Shown: in pieces, positions 23,645-55,757 of the stretch
Layout of the letters: each line of letters begins with the position of its first letter
How positions within the stretch are numbered: position 1 is the stretch's first letter
NCBI GenBank assembly: GCA_030704615.1
Contig: CM060731.1
Coordinates: 14,074,001-14,138,000 of the forward strand
DNA from: Takakia lepidozioides
Lineage: Eukaryota; Plantae; Bryophyta
Direction: 5' to 3'
Length of the DNA: 64,000 bases
Notes under the pieces: model-generated
Seen by the model: the letters and a program-made list of their open reading frames with translations, nothing else
Database searches by the model: none
What the model was told of the DNA's origin: nothing
Translations under genes and position numbers: made by a program

Positions 23645-26330
23645 ATCACAAGTTATGGTCACCATCTACTCAAATTTTGTGAGATTCAAGGGCTTGTCAT
23701 CTACAATGGCACTACCAATTACAAATCCTCCAGTCAGTTCACCTGCCACACGTACAAGGGACAGAGCGTAGTCGACTATCTCTTGGGGTGCCCCAACACA
23801 ACTGATAGGGTCAGCTCTTTTTACATTACGAGGTAACCGGATAATGATCACTCTTGCCTTTCCTTTGCATTTCCTTTGCATTTCCATCCATCTCTTACCC
23901 CATGAGGGACTCCTTCGCTTCTCTCCTTTCACTTTAATACTCCCTTCACTCACTTACACCAATATGAAACATGCCTAGCGTCAATCCTCCCCTCCATCAT
24001 GAATCTACCATCCACTAATGACAAAGCTTCCTATCTTACTCCCGCTCTTTGGGACTCAGCCCTGCGATCCTTCCCAGTCACCCTCCCATCTACCTCCTCA
24101 TCTTTCTCCACTCGTAGATATGCACCCTTCTATATTGACGAAGAATGCAAAGTTGCTAGACGTCACATCAAATCTTTGCTCCTTGATATCCATTCTTCTC
24201 CAGATTCCAAAAACCTAGCTCTCAAGCACTATAAGTCCCTCATTAGATCCAAAAAGAGAGCCTACACTTTCAAGCTGCAATCTACTTTCCTTGCAAAAGT
24301 CAGGCTGTCTCCTCGTTCCTTTTGGTCCCTCCTTAAGCCTCACAGAGACCCACCCCCAACCACTGACATCCACATCTGGCATGAGTATGCTCAGTCATTG
24401 TATCACTCCCCAAACCAATCTCCCTTTCCCATAGCCTCCAAACCCCTACACTTCTCTCTCTTCACTACAGCCAATATCAGCAAGGCAGTCAAGAAGTTGC
24501 AAAATGGCAGGGCATTGGACATATCAGGGCTACAAAATGAATTCATCAAGCACGCGGCAACAACTTTGGCCCAATTTATAACATACCTCTTCAATGAAGC
24601 ACATGGCTTTCTAACAGAGTGGACAAAGAGCATCATCCACCCCCTCTTCAAGAGCGGTGACAAGCTCGCACCGATCACCAACTATCGCACAATTATGGTG
24701 TCTTCGTTACTGGCTAAACTGTTTGGGGCAGTAGTGGCAATGGAACTGGATGATTGGGCTGAATCCTCTCAAATGCGTACTATAAATGCTTGCTTCGTAG
24801 ACTTTCAAAAGGCTTTTGACCTTTTGATTCGGTTCCTCGAGACCTTCTTTTCCAACGGCTCCATAGGGTGGGAGTCCCTCAGGACATCCTATGCCATCTG
24901 TTCCATGCATGAGATTGTCATTGGCATGGTCAACGTCGCGGGGGAATTCTCAGCAGAGGTGCATAGCAACATTGGGGTCAAACAGGGCTGCCCCCTCTCA
25001 CCTACCCTTTTCAGGATCTACATTGACGCTTTGGAAGGTTGCATCTCAAAAAACCATGGAGTCAGATCTCCTCTACACTGATGATGTTGCCCTCTTGGCA
25101 CAATCTCATGTCTTCCTGCAACGCCATCTTCACATCCTGGAAGAGTTCTCCAAAGACTATGGGCTGCAAGTCAATCTTAGCAAAACCAAGATCATGGTTT
25201 TCAATGGCCAAGCATACCACAGATACACTGGTTATCCAAATTCCAGTTTGCATCAACTGCCCTGGACAGATCGACAAAGGGCAAGGCAGCCTCCATCTCC
25301 CTTCAGGTCAAATGCAAACAGATACATCTGCGCCAACCCCCAAAAGTGGCTATTGACAGCGTTGTCACCCCGGCCGCCACTTCTGGTTGTGAATTCTAGG
25401 CACCTGGTGTCCCAGTTTCCTGGTGGGAAAAAAATCTGGAACCATTGCAGTCATCTTTTCTCCAAGCAATGCTTGGCGCCTGAGGCACAACTCCATCTCA
25501 CATCCTATGTGCAGAGTTTGCATGCGTGCCACTTCAAACCGAGGCCCTCTTCCGGCTTACAATCTTTCTTAATAGGTTACAAGCCCTTCCACCCAAGGGG
25601 CTCGTGGCAAGAGCCCTCGCAGCATCTACTAGGCTCAAAACAGCAGGTTTCAAGCACTCCTGGTATGCTCGAGTATGCAGTTTTTTTGAGGGCAATGGAC
25701 TCTCTATTGCTTCACTATTGCCAGAGAATCCAGAAGGATGGAAATCTCATCTAAACATGATTGCAACAAACTCATTAGAAGGGAACTTACGGAACTACAT
25801 GTCAGGAGAACTTGGAAGCTACCCTATCTCACAACAAAGCTCCATTTCTCTCGAGAGACATTCTTGGTTTGCTGTGATGATAGAATCCTGCGGCCCAATT
25901 ACCTTTTGGCGCCGTTTTCCCCTTCCCTCCTGAGGGTATTGGGGCGGTCAGGGTGGGCTCCCACAATCTACGGATAGAGACTGGCAAATGGGAAAACCTG
26001 CAATGGGAGGACCGCCTATATTGCCCAGCTTGCACCAGGCGCAACCAGGAAATCGAAACTGAAGAACACTTCTTCTTTTATTGCCCCGTATACTATGAGA
26101 TCCGTGGGAGATTCCACTGTCTATTCCGTGGAACTCAATCTCTCACTGAAGTCTTCCACTAGGAGGATAAAAAATCTTGGCAGCTTACCTGCACGAGGCC
26201 TGACCCTTAGACATTCCTTTGAGCGGTAGTTTCTTTTGGGCTGTTTGTTTCCTCTCTCATGTTTTTTCCATTTTGTCCCATAAGCTCTTTGAGCTTTCCG
26301 CGGACGTTATAAAGTACCATTTCATTTCAT
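23645..26330 (+). mobile_element. RTEX-like LINE (partial APE + RT + C-terminal Zn motif), degraded, in an RPGRIP1L intron
   Basis: GHHLLKFC..FTCHTYKGQSVVDYLL (APE end); NYRTIMVSS, FVDFQKAFD, GVKQGCPLSPTLF, LLYTDD (RT); HNLRIETGKW; (CATTT)n tail. Confidence 0.88.
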
Positions 26331-48000: not shown

Positions 48001-48503
48001 TCTTCCACTGGTGGTCGAAATATTTGGCTCATTGCATCGGCACTTCGACGATTTCCTGCGGACATGTGCACATCATGCAGCCAAGAGCGGGTCCACTGGC
48101 ATCCCACATGCCTCCGTCCTTGTCGCCTACTATCGACAACGTGTTTCTGTTGCTTTGCAGAGAGCACAAGCCATCTCTATTTTGCATCGGGCTGATGTGG
48201 CTAGCTCCGCGTCATCTCGTCTTCCGCCTCTCCCTGACACTTTGTCTATCTCCTTGTCTGATCTCCTCCAGGCTGTTGGCTGGGAGGGTCGCTCTGCTTG
48301 AGTAGTTTACTATAGCTTCTGTTTTCGTCGCTGGTTGAGTAGCTTACTATAGCTTTTGTTTTTTTTCTGTAGCTGAGTAGCTTACAATAGCTTTTTGTTT
48401 TCTTCTCTTGTTTCTTGTTCCTCCCCCCCTTTTTGGGAACTTCACATCACGTTCACCCATTGTACATGTTGTAGCCTAAATAAAGTCTTACAGGGTTTCA
48501 TCA
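45043..48503 (+). mobile_element. CRE-clade-like non-LTR retrotransposon (RT + CCHC + restriction-like endonuclease)
   Basis: RPITVGE, QFGIATPGGCE, VDITNAFNTVSR, GTRQGDPLGGLLF, GGVGL, GAWL, CVC..HLLRC, HDMVRN, RVDIV, KERDY, FLPLVVEIFG. AATAAA then a tcatca end; TSD ttccaagt at 45035-45042 and 48504-48511; a few stops. Confidence 0.85.
48299..48405 (+). repeat. Three ~37-bp tandem units in the CRE 3' UTR
   Basis: tgagtag(c/t)ttac(t/a)atagcttt.gtttt starting ~48299, ~48336 and ~48374. Confidence 0.8.
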
Positions 48504-50768
48504 TTCCAAGTTCTCTTGACATGTAATTCCATAAGCTCTCTCCTAATGAGTCTGTTGCGGTCATGTCTGGATGTGATGTCCACCTCATCTGGGTTCATTG
48601 GTAATAGGAAAGCAGTAGAAAGTCCGTTACGTTGAAATAAACTGTCCACTCGAGCATACCAGGAGTTCATGAAACCTGCAGCTTTGAGCCTCATAGATGT
48701 TGTGAGGGCCCTTGCCACTAGCCCTTTGGGTGGAAGGGCCTGCAATCTATGGAGAAAGATTGTAAGCCTGAAGAGGGCCTCGGATTGCAATGGTACACAT
48801 GCGAACTCTGCACCTAGGATCTGAGATGGAGTTGTGCTCCTGGCGCCAAGCATTGCTTGGAGAAAAGATGACTGTAATGGTTCCAAATTCTTTTCCCACC
48901 AGGAGACAGGGACACCAGGTGCCCAGAACTCACAACCATGGATGGTAGCAGGGCCGACAACGGTGTCGAACAGCCACTTTTTGGTCGGGGGATGCCGCAG
49001 ATGTATTTGCTTGCATTTGGCCTGAAGGCGGACGGAGGCTGCCTTACCTTTGGTCAATCCGTCCAAGGCAGTGGCTGCAAAGTGAAACTTGGGGGAGTGG
49101 ATAACCAGACCCAGGTACCGGTATGATTTCACAATCTCAACTTCCTGCTGGTTGAAGATGAATCTACGATCAGCCTGGCCATTGAAGACCATGATCTTGG
49201 TCTTGCTAAGATTGACTTGCATCCCATAGTCTTTGCAGAACTGTTCCAAAATTTTGAGATGGCGTTGCAGGAAGACCGGGGATAGTGCCAAAAGGGCAAC
49301 ATCATCAGCGTAGAGGAGATCTGATTGCGTTGGTCCCCCATCCAATGGTACCCCAACCCCATGGTTTTTTGATATGTAATTCTCCAAAGCGTCAATGTAG
49401 ATCCCGAACAGGGTAGGTGAAAGGGGGCAGCCCTGTTTGACTCCGATGTTGCTGTGGACCTCGGCTGAGAATTCACCAGCGACGTGGACCATGCCAGTGA
49501 CAATCTCAAACATAGAAGAGATGGCACAAAGGATGTCTGGAGGGACTTCCACTCTATGGAGCCGTTGGAAGAGAAGGTCCCGAGGAACTGAATCAAAGGC
49601 TTTGTGAAAGTCCACGAAGCAAACATAGACCATTCTTTTGTCATAGCGTGCACTTTCCACCATAACCTGAAGAGTGAAGAGACAAACTTGTTCTACTTGG
49701 TTTGCATGTCTTTCGTTTACGTCCGGCTCTGCGTACTTGACTTCAGATGCGAGGTTTCTACTGTCTTGCACCACGTGGGACGGCGAGCTTGTTGCTCTAC
49801 ACTCTACACACAGCGAACCACCAGAAGCAGCATGTATTAACGGGCTGTATTGTGGGTCGGTAAGTTCTGCATACTTTGATAAACGTGCTTTTGTGATCTC
49901 CTGAGACACGTGGTAAAAGTAGCATTTCTCAAAGTGGACTAGTGCAAAACAATCCTGGATAGGAACATGGCAATCTCATTATGATAGGACGGATCTGTAA
50001 GCGTACGGGAGCTTGGGGACTTGGAGGTTGCCAGGCCGAGCATTTGCAGAGGGGCGCCATGTGCGACTTTGCGGGATCAAGGAGTCAACACCAAAGTCTT
50101 CATTTCTTGCTAAGGTCGCTTCTAAGATTGTCTTGACTCTAATGTCTTTGCTGTTCCTTCATGCGTACTGGACTACTGTGAACATCGTTAGTTCTTCATC
50201 TTCTAGCAAAGTTTGTCTGGTGCAGGTAACCTTTGAGCCAAATATTCTTGACAAGATTGCCAATTCATCTCAGTTGTCAAGGTCACAGTGTCTTACGTGA
50301 TTTCTAATTGCCAATTAATGATGTGGATTCTACAGTAAAATTGATCAAACCTGTTGTCCCACCACTGTGAAGAATCTGACGAGAACTTCGGCTATGGTTT
50401 TTCTTTGCTGTTTTCTCAAGCGTGCAAGAACTACAAGTTGCATGCTGTATTGTAGGGCGAGGATAGTGTACACCCCCATAGCAACCATTCCCATAGCATA
50501 CTCAGTGGAACTGAGCTTCTCACTCAGTATATTGGTGGGCTCAAAACGATCAGGTCTTATATAAGCACATTGATTTCAATTGTGATTGTGGAGACTGGAG
50601 ACCAGGATGCCCACAGGTTTAACAGGTTAGAGACATAGTTAGTTTTGCATGTCTTAAGTTACCTGGTTGTTGATTTATGGCAGGTGGTAGAAAATTTGTA
50701 TCTCCTGCATCAAATCAGAGATTTCTTTCTCCACGGGCACCACAGTTGACTCATTCTATCCTGCAACC

Positions 50769-51628
50769 ATGAGATCCCTCGAATCAGCACATACTGTGTG
50801 TGTAGCATCAATGCAGAACATGCCTGTCTTCACCACATCTTCTCAAGGCATCTTGGGTTGTCCTCGTAGGGCTCCAGGAGGCTTCACTGCTTCCAAGCCT
50901 GTCCCTGGGCTGAAAGGTTCAAGAAGGTGTGGGATGTACTCTCCTTTTCATTTCCAGAACAGCCTTACAGTCAGATTTGTGTCAATCAGTTTCACGTCAA
51001 ATGCGGGGCTGTGGGGACCACTGGAAGAAGATGAGGGGGATTGGCAAGGAGGGTACCTGGAGCTGGAGAATGAGTGGCCATGTCCACCTGGCGTTACAAT
51101 CAGCAAGACAGTTCCCAACAGAAGCAAATGTCCAAAAAGCCGAAATACAGAGGAGGACAAGCTATGTAACGAATACTTTTCGGATCCCAGTGAATGGTGG
51201 GACAATCTAGACGATAAGGTGAATTCCTGTTATGCCACAGCAGAAGCAGACAACAAAGCTGCATTGAAAAACTCTCAAGAGTATGCCGTAGCCAACACTT
51301 TTCCAGTACTTAGTTGCTTCCTCTCTCTGTTACAGACATTCATTGAGCAGAGAAACTAGTGTCTGCTAGGCAGAGGTTGGATATTTGCTTTGTAAATTCT
51401 GGGTGGTCATTGTCAGCTGCTGTTGCCGAAAGAGAGGATCTATGCATTTCTCGAATTTCTCTGTGGAGGCAATAATAGCTGAAGCAGGCAGGGACAGCGG
51501 GTGAGTGCAGATCCATCATGGAGGACCAGATGTCAAGTGCAGTACTACCAATGAGGCACTATGGTTTGAAAGCTACAAGAGGCTTGCATGGGTAGATGTA
51601 GAATTGAAGAAGCTGCAAGCAGGTAGGG
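50769..51628 (+). CDS. Upstream exons of the PPR gene: putative transit peptide + OSB-type PDF motif
   Basis: Exon 50769-51218 (..LCNEYFSDPSEWWDNLDDK|gt) and exon 51511-51622/51628 (ag|IHHGGPDVKCSTTNEALWFESYKRLAWVDVELKKLQA). Phase 1 is compatible with an acceptor at 53544/53545 of the PPR exon; the junction is inferred. Confidence 0.62.
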
Positions 51629-52449
51629 GTAAGTATCATAAAATGCTATGAGATAAATCAGGTGATATGCAGAGTGCTCCTTACTTTAGGTATCAATGAA
51701 GGATAAATCTTTCATAGGGTCTTAATCCGTTTGGGTTTAGAATGATTATTGGATGCTACCAGCATTGTCATGGTGCCAGTTTGGTCAATTATCTTCCTTG
51801 TTCTTCACATGGTTAAACTTGTTTCTTCATCTGTCAGACGTACCAGGAGATAACTGTGAGTTTGCCCCTTTTCCACGTCCCTGCCGCCTCCTGCCTGCTT
51901 CCTTTTCTTTTGGGTTTCACATGAGGGTTTACTGAACAACGGTCTACTATCTTTGCATCATGGGCTTTGTATGTAAGTTGGCTTGTCTGATGAGTCTCTG
52001 GTGGGTCTGATGTTTTATTTGAAACATGGGGTTGCAGGCAAATATTCAAAAAGTCAAAATAGAGATGAGGAGGAGCTTTGGAACCCCAGTCATTGGTGGG
52101 CCAATCGAGGCTGTAAGGTGAATGCCTGTTATAGTACAAAGAATAAGATGCATTGAAAACACTTCTCAATAAGTAAACGATGCTGTACAGTCTCTCTCTT
52201 TCTGATGCTTGTGTGAAGGGATTTCTAGGGGAGATCTGGAAAGCCTGAGCCAATTGTTTATACGAAGTCAAGTCCCACCACTAGAGTGAGCCCCTCATGA
52301 AGGTAGTGTCTGTTCCCTCTTGTTCTGCCTAAACTGGTCGCTGGATCTACGGCAAACAACGTCTCATGAGTACACACTCTCTTTTTGGATGTTATAATGT
52401 TGTTTTTTCTTGCTTTTTCTTTCTCTGTTTGATGCTGTTTGATCTGTTA

Positions 52450-52620
52450 AATATGCTTGGCAGCTTACCTGCATGAGGCCTTCACCCTTTAACAATCACT
52501 CGAACAGTAGTTCTTATTCTTGGCTTTGGTTTTGTTTCCTCTCTCATGTTTTCTTCCATTTTGTCCCATAAGCTCTATGAGCTTTCTGCGGACGTTATAT
52601 AGCACCATTTCATTTCATTT
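52450..52620 (+). mobile_element. Short RTEX-like 3' tail insertion
   Basis: tgcttggcagcttacctgcatgaggcc...cataagctctatgagctttctgcggacgtt..(catttt/cattt)n; tctgtt on both flanks. Confidence 0.8.
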
Positions 52621-52857
52621 CTGTTTTGACAATCCCTTCTCATCAATATGGACTGGTCGTGCATCCATTTCATGTGTCAATCTGCTCTAATGTAGGGTGC
52701 CAGTTGAGCAGTGCTGGATCAACTGCTTTCTGAAACAGTCAATTCCTTGTAACTTGGGGCTGTCATTGTCAGCTATTTGTGGCAGGAGGAAGGACTCGTG
52801 ATTTATGTTGTGGAGGCACGGATAGCTCAGGGAGGCAAGGATGGATTGTGGGTGCAG

Positions 52858-52975
52858 GTTCACCATAAAGGACCAGGGATCAAGTGCAAGAGCACCAACA
52901 AGGTACTGTGGATTGACAGCCACAAGAGACCTGTGTGCTTATCTGGTCGATTGGAGAAATTGGAAGCAGCTAGGC
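52858..52975 (+). other. Duplicated copy of the PDF second-half exon
   Basis: ag|VHHKGPGIKCKSTNKVLWIDSHKRPVCLSGRLEKLEAA; upstream intron sequence is also similar to 51460-51510; the equivalent GT donor is missing. Confidence 0.6.
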
Positions 52976-53522
52976 AAAAGTCTGCAGCGAGCACTGGTGG
53001 AGGGGGATTATCAGGGTTCTTCCAGTATAACTGTCCCTTCTCTTTAACAGATGCATACCTGCTGAATTTCTAATCTTTCTGTTAGTTTCATGGGGTTCAT
53101 AATTTTCATGAAGGGACCAAGACCACATATTGGAAGATTCAGAGTTATATTTGTGAGTGAAGGTTTAGCTACTTCTTTTTGTTTGGACAGAATGGAGCTG
53201 CAATGGTATGTCAGGGTGTGCAGAAGGTTACACACTTTGAGGGAATAACACTGAAGTTTACATTTTAGCCTTTTGTCGGTGTGAAGGTGAACAGAGTTGG
53301 CAGAAATGGTTCTTAGTAGTCCATACAGATATGGAACTGCAGCTGGTGTCCAAGTTGGTCTATTTGTTGCAAGACTGCACCTCTCTGATGTGGGAATGCA
53401 ACCTAAAGAGAATCCCTATTCATGGAGGAGCTGGTCCATGTGAAGAGGTCTTTCTTGCAAGTATATAGGAGCTTTCAAATCTATGAATATCAAGTCTGAT
53501 TATCAAGGGTTCTAACTAAAAT

Positions 53523-55757
53523 TTGGATTCATGCAGGATGGCAGGGTTGGAGACAGAGTTGTATCAATCAGACACCTCCACCATGACCACTACTTGTGAC
53601 AGAAGACCTATAGAGGGAGTCAACAAGAACTCATCTGGCACTTGTGAGTGTTTGAGGACTCTATGTAATGCAGGACGATTGCAAGATGCATTGCACATTT
53701 TGAACCAAGGAGAGATTTCGGTGGATTTGAATACTTACGGCTTTCTCTTGCAAGAGTGCATCGAGGTGAAAGGCCTAGCAGAGGGGAGGCAGGTGCACTC
53801 CCACATTATCCAAAGTGGATTCATGCCAAGCGTCTTCCTGCTCAACACCATCATCAACATGTTTATTAAGTGTGGGAGTTTGGTGGATGCGCGCCTAGTG
53901 TTTGACAAAATGTCTGAACGAGATGTGTTTACATGGACTACAATGATGGCTGGTTATGCCAAACATGAGTGTAATAGGGAGGCCTTTCAGATGTACGAGC
54001 AAATGGTACTGGAAGGGGTGACACCTAACAGGGTTACAGCCACTTGCATACTCAAGGCGTGTGCTGGCCTAGGAGCCCTGGAAAAGGGCCAAGAGGTCTA
54101 TGCTGATATTATCAAAGCTGGAATTGAACCAGATGTCATTCTGGAGACTGCACTTGTTAACATGTATGCCAAATGTGGGAGCATGAAGGATGCATGTGAG
54201 GTGTTTGACAACATGGCACAGCGAGATGTAGTCGCATGGAGTGCAATGATCACAGGATATGCTCAGCAAGGGAGTGGTTGGAAGGCTTTTGAGATGTATA
54301 AGCAAATGATGTGGGAAGGGGTGATGGCCAACAATGTGACCTTCATTTGTGTTCTCAAGGCGTGTGCCAGCCTAGGAGCCTTTGAAAAGGGCAAAGAGGT
54401 CCACGATGACATCATAAATGCTGGAATTGTGCCAGATATTATTCTGGAGAATACCCTAGTTGACATGTATGCCAAATGCGGGAAAATAAAGGATGCACGT
54501 CGAGTGTTTGACAATATGGCTCTACAAAATGTTGTCTCATGGAACGTGATCATTGCAGGATATACAAGGCATGGGTATGGTAGGGAGGCTTTTGAGATGT
54601 ATGAGCGAATGATATGGACAGGGGTTATGCCAGACAAGGTAACATTTATTTGTGTTCTGAATGCTTGTGCAAGCCTTGCAGCTCTAGAAAAGGGCAAAGG
54701 GGTGCATGCTGCCATCATCAAAGCTGGAATTCCATTGGATACCATTCTCGAAAATAGCCTTGTCGACATGTATGCCAAATCAGGGAGCCTGAGGGATGCA
54801 CGGCAAGTCTTTGGCCAAATGGCTCAACGAAATGTAGTCTCATGGAGTGCATTAATTGCAGGATATGGGCAGCATGGGTATAGCAGGGAGGCCCTCCAAC
54901 TATTCGAACACATGCAACAGGAAGGCTGGAAGCCAGACAATATCACATTTATATCGGTTCTCTCTGCATGTAGCCATGTGGGCCTAGTGGATGAAGGGCA
55001 TCACTACTTTGATTCCATCAGTCAAGATTATGGCCTTACCCCCACAGCGGAGCATTTTGGCTGCATGGTGGACCTTCTTGGCCGTGGAGGGCAATTGGAC
55101 AAGGCAGAAGACTTCATTAATAGCATGCCATTCAAACCAGGCTCTTTGGTGTGGATGGCCTTGCTTGGTGCCTGCAGAATCCATGGCAATGTGCAGGTAG
55201 CAGAACATGCAGCAAAGTATATTCTCAAGTGTAATCCACAGGATGCTCCAACTTATGTGATGCTATCAAACATCTATGCTGCAGCTGACAGATGGGATGA
55301 TACAGCACAGGTAAGGAAAATGATGCAGCACAGAGGTGTCAGAAGGAAGCCAGGGCAGAGCTGCATTGAGGTGGACGACTGGGCACATACTTTTGTTGTA
55401 GATGATAAGTTGCATCCACAAATTGAGAAGATCCATGCTGAGCTGAAGCGATTATCTGGGTTGATGAAGGCAGCCGGGTACGTGCCTGACACACGCTTTG
55501 TATTGCGTAACGTGGAAGAGGAGCAAAAAGAATTTTCTATTGGCCACCACAGTGAGAAGCTGGCCATTGCTTTTGGGCTGATCAGCACCCCACCTGGGAC
55601 GCCTCTCCGTATCATCAAGAACCTTCGAGTGTGTGGTGACTGCCACACGGCCACCAAGTTCATCTCAAAGATTGTTGAACGAACAATTGTTGTACGGGAT
55701 GCCAATCGGTTTCACCACTTTGAAGCTGGGGTTTGTTCTTGTGGGGATTACTGGTGA
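53523..55757 (+). CDS. PLS-class PPR protein with E1-E2-DYW (PG-type) cytidine deaminase domain; C-to-U organellar RNA-editing factor
   Basis: 14 repeats L-S-(P-L-S)x3-P2-L2-S2, then E1, E2, PG box (KPGQSCIEV), HHSEKLA, CGDCH and terminal CSCGDYW*. Confidence 0.96.
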   Translation: MDSCRMAGLETELYQSDTSTMTTTCDRRPIEGVNKNSSGTCECLRTLCNAGRLQDALHILNQGEISVDLNTYGFLLQECIEVKGLAEGRQVHSHIIQSGFMPSVFLLNTIINMFIKCGSLVDARLVFDKMSERDVFTWTTMMAGYAKHECNREAFQMYEQMVLEGVTPNRVTATCILKACAGLGALEKGQEVYADIIKAGIEPDVILETALVNMYAKCGSMKDACEVFDNMAQRDVVAWSAMITGYAQQGSGWKAFEMYKQMMWEGVMANNVTFICVLKACASLGAFEKGKEVHDDIINAGIVPDIILENTLVDMYAKCGKIKDARRVFDNMALQNVVSWNVIIAGYTRHGYGREAFEMYERMIWTGVMPDKVTFICVLNACASLAALEKGKGVHAAIIKAGIPLDTILENSLVDMYAKSGSLRDARQVFGQMAQRNVVSWSALIAGYGQHGYSREALQLFEHMQQEGWKPDNITFISVLSACSHVGLVDEGHHYFDSISQDYGLTPTAEHFGCMVDLLGRGGQLDKAEDFINSMPFKPGSLVWMALLGACRIHGNVQVAEHAAKYILKCNPQDAPTYVMLSNIYAAADRWDDTAQVRKMMQHRGVRRKPGQSCIEVDDWAHTFVVDDKLHPQIEKIHAELKRLSGLMKAAGYVPDTRFVLRNVEEEQKEFSIGHHSEKLAIAFGLISTPPGTPLRIIKNLRVCGDCHTATKFISKIVERTIVVRDANRFHHFEAGVCSCGDYW

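Follow-up and report, generated by a model that had tools for sequence, protein, structure and literature searches.

We analysed a stretch of 64,000 nucleotides (nt) from Takakia lepidozioides (GenBank assembly GCA_030704615.1, contig CM060731.1, positions 14,074,001 to 14,138,000 of the forward strand), hereafter called the window, and numbered by its own first letter. On its + strand, between positions 50769 and 55757, lies a gene whose 3' part encodes a PPR-type RNA-editing factor with a DYW deaminase, and whose 5' exons encode two diverged copies of the PDF motif, a motif of the plant OSB proteins, which bind single-stranded DNA (ssDNA). The interpretation that we favor, and hold with moderate confidence, is that this is one five-exon nuclear gene encoding an organelle-targeted PLS-E-DYW C-to-U editing factor, with two tandem PDF modules of ~50 amino acids between its transit peptide and its PPR array, and that the module most likely came from an OSB-like gene by exon shuffling. 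Of the gene model itself, and of the gene's membership in a wider family of PDF-PPR genes, we are highly confident.

Two public sequencing runs from the same organism, X1 and X2, were compared, as contigs, with 5101 nt of the window; the type of the runs is labelled only 'RNA?', which is a guess. Intron-skipping contigs of X1 chained the five exons listed in Table 1 in frame, with intron phases of 0, 1, 0, and 2 and no stop codon, and the predicted product of 1011 amino acids comprises, in order, a transit-peptide-like start, PDF module 1, PDF module 2, PLS repeats, an E motif, and an intact DYW deaminase. All four junctions were present in X1 contigs with GT..AG boundaries: 51218>51511 and 51628>52038 together in an 814-nt contig (depth 29.9) that extends 97 nt upstream of 50700, 52117>52858 at a depth of 9.6, and 53024>53537 at a depth of 26.5. 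Two minor splice forms were also seen in X1, one using an acceptor at 52773 (52117>52773; depth 8.3) and the other a donor at 52902 (52902>53537; depth 9.7), both of which reach a stop within ~30 codons. The upstream exons were poorly covered by X2. At the 5' end, the exon 1 contig of X1 reaches ~50603, if colinear. The 5' leader also holds an upstream open reading frame of 31 codons (50677-50772, + strand) whose TGA overlaps the main start codon (ATGA) and which could regulate translation.

An earlier model-made reading of the letters (the sequence-only reading) had placed two exons with one split PDF motif upstream of the PPR open reading frame (ORF), joined through the junctions 51218>51511 and 51622/51628>53545. 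The first junction was found as predicted; in place of the second, the X1 contigs showed the three later joints given above. Beyond its first junction that exon model was wrong, and exons 3 and 4, with a second split module, had been missed. The acceptor at 53536/53537, which that reading had set aside as out of phase, was used in the X1 contig (AG at 53535-36, with exon 5 beginning at 53537, one base before the in-frame ATG at 53538), and it is in phase because exons 3 and 4 are included. Its central proposal, an in-frame fusion of PDF upstream of a PPR-E-DYW factor, agrees with the contig joints and the stop-free frame.

Table 1. Parts of the PDF-PPR gene and features next to it, in window coordinates.
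Feature	Position	Strand	Length	Description
TATA-box-like element	50559..50566	+		TATATAAG; read from sequence, ~40 nt upstream of the exon 1 contig end; putative promoter role
Exon 1, coding part	50769..51218	+	450 nt (150 codons)	ATG 50769; transit-peptide-like N-terminus; phase-0 GT donor after ...FSDPSEWWDNLDDK
PDF module 1, first half (within exon 1)	51153-51218	+		...LCNEYFSDPSEWWDNLDDK; also read as ...PSEWWDNLDDK
Exon 2	51511..51628	+	118 nt	PDF module 1, second half (IHHGGPDVKCSTTNEALW...AWV...; IHHGGPDVKC...) and linker; ends in phase 1
Exon 3	52038..52117	+	80 nt	PDF module 2, first half (...EELWNPSHWWANRGCK); phase 1 in, phase 0 out
Exon 4	52858..53024	+	167 nt	PDF module 2, second half (VHHKGPGIKCKSTNKVLW...) and linker; ends in phase 2
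Exon 5	53537..55757	+	2221 nt	PLS-class PPR array, E motif ~55182-55370, E+, DYW deaminase ~55476-55754, stop codon
Duplication unit 1	51124..51634	+		End of exon 1, intron 1, exon 2
Duplication unit 2	52038..52981	+		Exon 3, intron 3, most of exon 4
Relic PDF first half	50345..50391	-		...DSSQWWDNR...; E 1.1e-5 and 3.6e-3 with the PDF profiles; ~400 nt upstream of the gene; nearer consensus than the gene's own copies

The editing-factor part occupies an uninterrupted + strand ORF running from 53523 (ATG 53538) to 55757. Pfam searches with the exon 5 ORF returned PPR_2 (7.1e-76; 9 stretches), PPR (1.8e-68; 11 stretches), E_motif over 1-63/63 of its model and above the cut-off (9.6e-17), and DYW_deaminase over its full model of 1-93/93 (3.7e-43), in keeping with the intact PLS-E-DYW frame noticed in the sequence-only reading; Eplus_motif was weak, scoring 17.5 bits against a cut-off of 24 bits. 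HSE, CGDCH, and the terminal DYW (...CSCGDYW) are readable in the ORF. In its PPR array, E/E+ region, complete DYW domain with HxE, CxxCH and terminal DYW, and organelle-type N-terminus, the window gene thus resembles PLS-class PPR-E-DYW factors such as Physcomitrium PPR56 and PPR65 and the DYW-type proteins of Arabidopsis. Those factors are described with only a targeting peptide before the PPR array, whereas the window gene has ~270 amino acids there, which include the two PDF modules and are encoded in four extra exons.

The composition of the N-terminus bears on whether the upstream exons and the PPR ORF form one gene. The first 60 amino acids from ATG 50769 hold 1 acidic, 7 basic, and 12 serine or threonine residues, as expected of the presequence suspected there in the sequence-only reading, whereas the first 60 after ATG 53538 hold 8 acidic residues and do not resemble a presequence. 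Import into an organelle therefore probably needs exon 1, which favors a fused protein. The alternative would be two genes, a small upstream gene encoding only PDF and an intronless PPR-DYW gene starting at ATG 53538, joined only in read-through or chimeric contigs. PPR-DYW genes are mostly intronless, the last acceptor lies one base before an in-frame ATG, the contigs are short (the exon 4-5 contig runs only 30 nt past the joint), and an X2 contig extends 8 nt beyond the donor at 53024, all of which would suit two genes. We consider this very improbable, as the joint is in frame, the peptide following ATG 53538 is acidic, and the contigs for exons 1-3 and for exons 4-5 have similar depths (~27-30). 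In addition, an annotated gene of the lycophyte Diphasiastrum complanatum, P0099, has a phase-2 intron between its PDF second-half exon and its PPR-DYW exon, like intron 4 of the window gene, which removes the suspicion raised by the acceptor next to the ATG and also places the window gene in the Diphasiastrum subfamily described below.

We then turn from the fused gene to the identity of its upstream modules. A profile built solely from 18 PPR-linked PDF motifs of lycophyte and liverwort PPR proteins (A1) was searched against 1.84 billion representative proteins, and a broader profile of 92 OSB and PPR motifs (A3) was also built; the whole 64 kb of the window was scanned in six frames, and exons were searched singly. 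A1 matched 1194 proteins at E<=1e-3. Among the best 110 of these, Pfam SSB, which marks the OSB architecture, is present in 29, PPR repeats in 9, and DYW in 2, and a Populus protein named 'protein OSB1, mitochondrial-like' was matched at 1.1e-28. Because a profile made from PPR-linked motifs only retrieves OSB1 and SSB-domain proteins, the PPR-linked motif and the PDF motif of OSB proteins are the same motif. Within the window only five matches fell below E=0.06 with A1 and A3, namely four exon pieces and one minus-strand relic (Table 1), noise starting from E>2. The exon 1 piece (hmm 2-27) scored 1.3e-6 with A1 and 2.7e-5 with A3, the exon 2 piece (hmm 29-60) 1.9e-3 and 1.1e-5, the exon 3 piece (hmm 11-27) ~0.05 with both, and the exon 4 piece (hmm 26-61) 1.3e-3 and 8.1e-5. 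On the + strand these pieces follow one another as first, second, first, and second half, each matching the corresponding half of the profile. The exon pieces are the top six-frame matches of both profiles.

No Pfam family, SSB included, matched any upstream exon at E up to 10, and since no SSB-like OB-fold domain was matched upstream, the window protein is classed as something other than an OSB protein. Pfam likewise returned nothing on the canonical PDF regions of database proteins, as it holds no PDF model. Tandem PDF copies are shared with the OSB proteins (Arabidopsis OSB1-4, of which OSB2 is PTAC9). The difference is one of context: OSB proteins combine an SSB-like OB fold with 1-5 C-terminal PDF motifs, whereas in the window gene the SSB/OB fold is lacking, the PDF modules stand N-terminal to an RNA-editing module, and the P-D-F triad is degenerate.

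An AlphaFold2 (AF2) model of the PDF module was predicted as a compact arrangement of a helix, short strands, and a helix (pLDDT 87.9; pTM 0.74). In the ESM Atlas this model found matches at TM 0.81-0.87 in Streptophyta clusters, three of PPR proteins and one of SSB proteins. Foldseek against the PDB gave no match below E=1, a wide VIA-align search gave a best Z of only 2.8, and the viral models of BFVD gave no match; because these fold searches yielded no convincing relative, the mode of binding cannot be read from a known fold. Two tailed-phage clusters in the ESM Atlas (Uroviricota; hypothetical proteins of ~190-200 amino acids) matched the model at TM 0.72 and 0.63 and may hint at where the fold came from. 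Among the protein matches, P0121 of Kingdonia uniflora (1160 amino acids) is an extreme PDF array, with 13 stretches matched and no domain recognized by Pfam, and falls outside both the OSB and the PPR architectures; some long angiosperm matches (a Striga ICR2-like protein, a Coptis kinesin) may be merged gene models.

Module 2 of the window gene arose within this gene lineage. Units 1 and 2 of Table 1 are a tandem duplication that includes the intron: in blastn, 51124-51278 aligned with 52038-52169 and 51390-51634 with 52747-52981, at 68% identity. Both modules share a derived form, HHxGP..KC, and because both carry it this form predates the duplication. Across the split between exons 3 and 4, module 2 reads ...ELWNPSHWWANRGCK before the intron and VHHKGPGIKC... 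after it. Intron 3 contains ~580 nt without a counterpart in intron 1. Over 52068-52751, in intron 3, the summed contig depth was in the thousands in both runs, compared to ~10-30 on neighboring exons; the segment resembles a transcribed repeat of dispersed type that entered the intron later than the duplication, and neither inverted repeats within it nor a second copy elsewhere in the window were found.

Retained in both modules are the WW pair, the K, the P, the LW, and the C-terminal helix region. The KHK that follows the triad in canonical motifs is KCS or KCK in the window modules. The sequence-only reading had seen a fit to the PDF consensus; profile A1 agrees that this is the OSB PDF motif, and the complete P-D-F triad is absent from both modules. 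A number of observations weigh against the interpretation that we favor. Module 1 has P-D-V and module 2 has P-G-I at the place of the triad, so that neither has the Pro-Asp-Phe signature, of which D and F are invariant in the alignment of 92 motifs. In addition, module 1 carries C for the first conserved W, a 15-nt deletion covers the FF segment in module 2, and each exon piece scores 10-26 bits, where a whole canonical motif reaches 80-105 bits. Between the two units, identity was 79% in the first-half exon, 90% in the 5' part of the intron, 77% in its 3' part, and 71% in the second-half exon; coding parts were thus no better kept than introns, and in this small sample there is no sign of purifying selection on both copies. 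Searches with exon 1 and with the first 110 amino acids of exon 5 found no close relative or orthologue. Support from transcripts is limited to the contigs of a single run, itself of uncertain type, and no single molecule runs across all the exons. The frame could also stay intact because a transit peptide has to be joined to the PPR array, so that by itself it is no proof that the PDF modules are needed.

Many of these observations would also fit a reading in which the fusion is real and the PDF modules are decaying relics, the N-terminal exons being kept as transit peptide and linker of an otherwise ordinary PPR-DYW factor. The lost triads, the W to C change, the FF deletion, the low profile scores, and an exon divergence at least as great as that of the introns all speak for it, as do the minor splice forms that end in stops. 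The X1 contigs differ from the window at four positions in PDF module 1 (51169, 51182, 51565, and 51573), probably allelic differences; two of the four are synonymous and the other two replace an amino acid (N by S, through AAC to AGC, and F by L, through TTT to CTT), which is again consistent with decay. We nonetheless consider the relic reading unlikely, although worth serious weight. The residues listed above as retained are the same in both modules, HHxGP..KC was already fixed before the duplication and then persisted, and all four introns are spliced with the frame intact; the sample is, moreover, too small for a real test of selection. In the reading that we favor, the modules are diverged PDF modules of one fused protein, and the PDF contribution in the window copy may be weakened.

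The fusion is widespread among seed-free plants. Among the best 120 relatives of the PPR ORF, 14 proteins of D. complanatum and P0065 of the liverwort Calypogeia fissa carry 1-3 canonical PDF motifs (..LWQEFFSDPSQWWDNR..K.SPKYPDFKHK.T.EGLW....P.WV) before the PPR array, and no Ginkgo, Cryptomeria, or angiosperm PPR protein within these 120 carries one. The PDF-PPR proteins that we can name come from that lycophyte (many genes), from C. fissa, from the fern Adiantum capillus-veneris (P0153) and, in mosses, from Sphagnum fallax, S. jensenii, S. tenellum, S. troendelagicum, and S. compactum. Nearest to the PPR part of the window protein is the Diphasiastrum subfamily, at 53-57% identity. The PDF-PPR genes of Diphasiastrum (P0099, P0273, P0280), Sphagnum (P0283), Calypogeia (P0065), and Adiantum (P0153) have the same order of parts as the window gene and are annotated as hypothetical or as PPR only. 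Their motifs are canonical (..WWDNR..K..P.YPDFKHK..), in contrast to the derived ones of the window gene (HHxGPD/G-V/I-KC), and in the genes from Calypogeia and Sphagnum, and in some of those from Diphasiastrum, a single exon encodes both the motif's second half and the PPR array, unlike in the window gene. The window gene can be placed as a diverged member of a large, old PDF-PPR family that spans liverworts, mosses, lycophytes, and ferns and is unnamed in the literature.

The intron pattern ties these genes together and points to their source. In Calypogeia P0065, Sphagnum P0283, and Diphasiastrum P0273 (twice), P0280, and P0099, the first-half exon measures 80 nt, with a phase-1 intron before it and a phase-0 intron directly behind the conserved K; the next exon starts with.NP.YPDFKHK. 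Exon 3 of the window gene has the same length and the same phases, and introns 1 and 3 of the window gene both cut after the K in phase 0; the upstream phase-1 intron is absent from exon 1. In a fern OSB gene, Ceratopteris P0312 (SSB plus two PDF motifs), phase-0 introns follow the K in both motifs and a phase-1 intron lies in the linker, so that positions and phases equal those of introns 1-3 of the window gene. Both motifs of Populus OSB1 lie in one exon, indicating that the intron is not universal in OSB genes. From the shared linker intron, inheritance of the whole two-module array from OSB was considered and dropped, as the internal duplication puts the origin of module 2 in this gene lineage; our claim is limited to the intron pattern of the PDF unit, which, as read from the genes compared, is common to the fern OSB gene.

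The phase-0 intron after the K and the phase-1 linker intron, both common to the fern OSB gene, make an OSB-like origin by exon shuffling most likely. In this scenario the PDF unit would be an old two-exon cassette that a PPR gene acquired from an OSB-like gene early in the evolution of land plants. The module would multiply by tandem duplication of the two-exon unit, which keeps the frame, and such a duplication would be the source of the second copy in the window gene.

The repeats of PPR-DYW factors run parallel to the RNA that they bind, upstream of the edited C, and deamination of that C is the work of the DYW domain. In the mechanism that we propose for the family, the PPR array would recognize the RNA preceding the target C, which the DYW domain would deaminate. 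The PDF modules lie at the N-terminal end of the array, which faces RNA 5' to the footprint; there they would hold single-stranded nucleic acid regardless of its sequence, be it RNA ahead of the editing site or nucleoid ssDNA. We suggest, tentatively and at somewhat less than even confidence, that the modules give family members an extra sequence-independent grip of this kind, and we are less confident of it for the degenerate copy in the window. According to reviews, the PDF motif of AtOSB1 is sufficient for ssDNA binding (PMC6963530; PMC4166229), and OSB1 and OSB2 prefer ssDNA over dsDNA or RNA (PMC4166229). That preference counts against the RNA side of this proposal, in which RNA binding by PDF is putative.

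Binding of ssDNA by the PDF motif of OSB1 is the sole support for a different reading, raised in the sequence-only reading, in which the PDF modules would redirect the DYW deaminase to ssDNA or R-loops and so lead to DNA editing. The PPR array, the E motif, and the DYW domain are as in ordinary C-to-U RNA-editing factors, with nothing in the sequence to distinguish the deaminase, and we know of no DNA-editing activity of DYW domains; we regard DNA editing as exceedingly unlikely.

An extra helper module for a PPR factor has known parallels in ORRM proteins (RRM), RRM-PPR fusions, MORF/RIP, and PPR-SMR, from which PDF differs in fold, and such help can be fused or supplied in trans (PMC13386178). 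MORF is restricted to seed plants (PMC13386178), and all PDF-PPR proteins that we could name are from seed-free plants; this complementary distribution is suggestive, in a limited sample. It is conceivable, albeit speculative and on balance improbable, that in seed-free plants the PDF modules anchor editing factors to ssDNA or nascent RNA at the nucleoid, coupling editing to transcription, or that they supply the helper function of MORF in cis, as an older design of the editosome.

The surroundings of the gene include a relic PDF first half on the opposite strand (Table 1), downstream of which neither a PDF second half nor a PPR array was found. This relic may be what is left of a PDF-PPR gene, in head-to-head orientation, that the adjoining retroelement truncated. 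A reverse-transcriptase ORF (RVT_1, 2.8e-27) lies at 48488-49909 on the - strand, with weaker fragments at 23999-25754 on the + strand; retroelement insertions flank the gene.

No publication describing a PDF-PPR-DYW fusion was found in a search that covered freely readable papers. PPR goes unmentioned in a 2026 survey of 182 OSB genes, as do OSB and PDF in a 2026 kingdom-wide survey of domain fusions in editing factors; that Pfam is without a PDF model is probably why domain-based surveys of OSB proteins and of editing factors overlooked the fusion. The PPR-DYW factor is a known type, and the accessory PDF module on it is unreported.

PPR-DYW factors are thought to act solo in early land plants and to depend on MORF, ORRM, and OZ helpers in seed plants. 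This picture of solo action changes with a conserved, previously unreported, and putatively nucleic-acid-binding module on many editing factors across liverworts, mosses, lycophytes, and ferns, and the finding means that the PDF module is a mobile two-exon unit not confined to OSB proteins. For the engineering of PPR proteins, a small accessory binder that has been attached many times in nature is of practical interest. The window locus, as a diverged member of the family, is well suited to asking if the module is still required.

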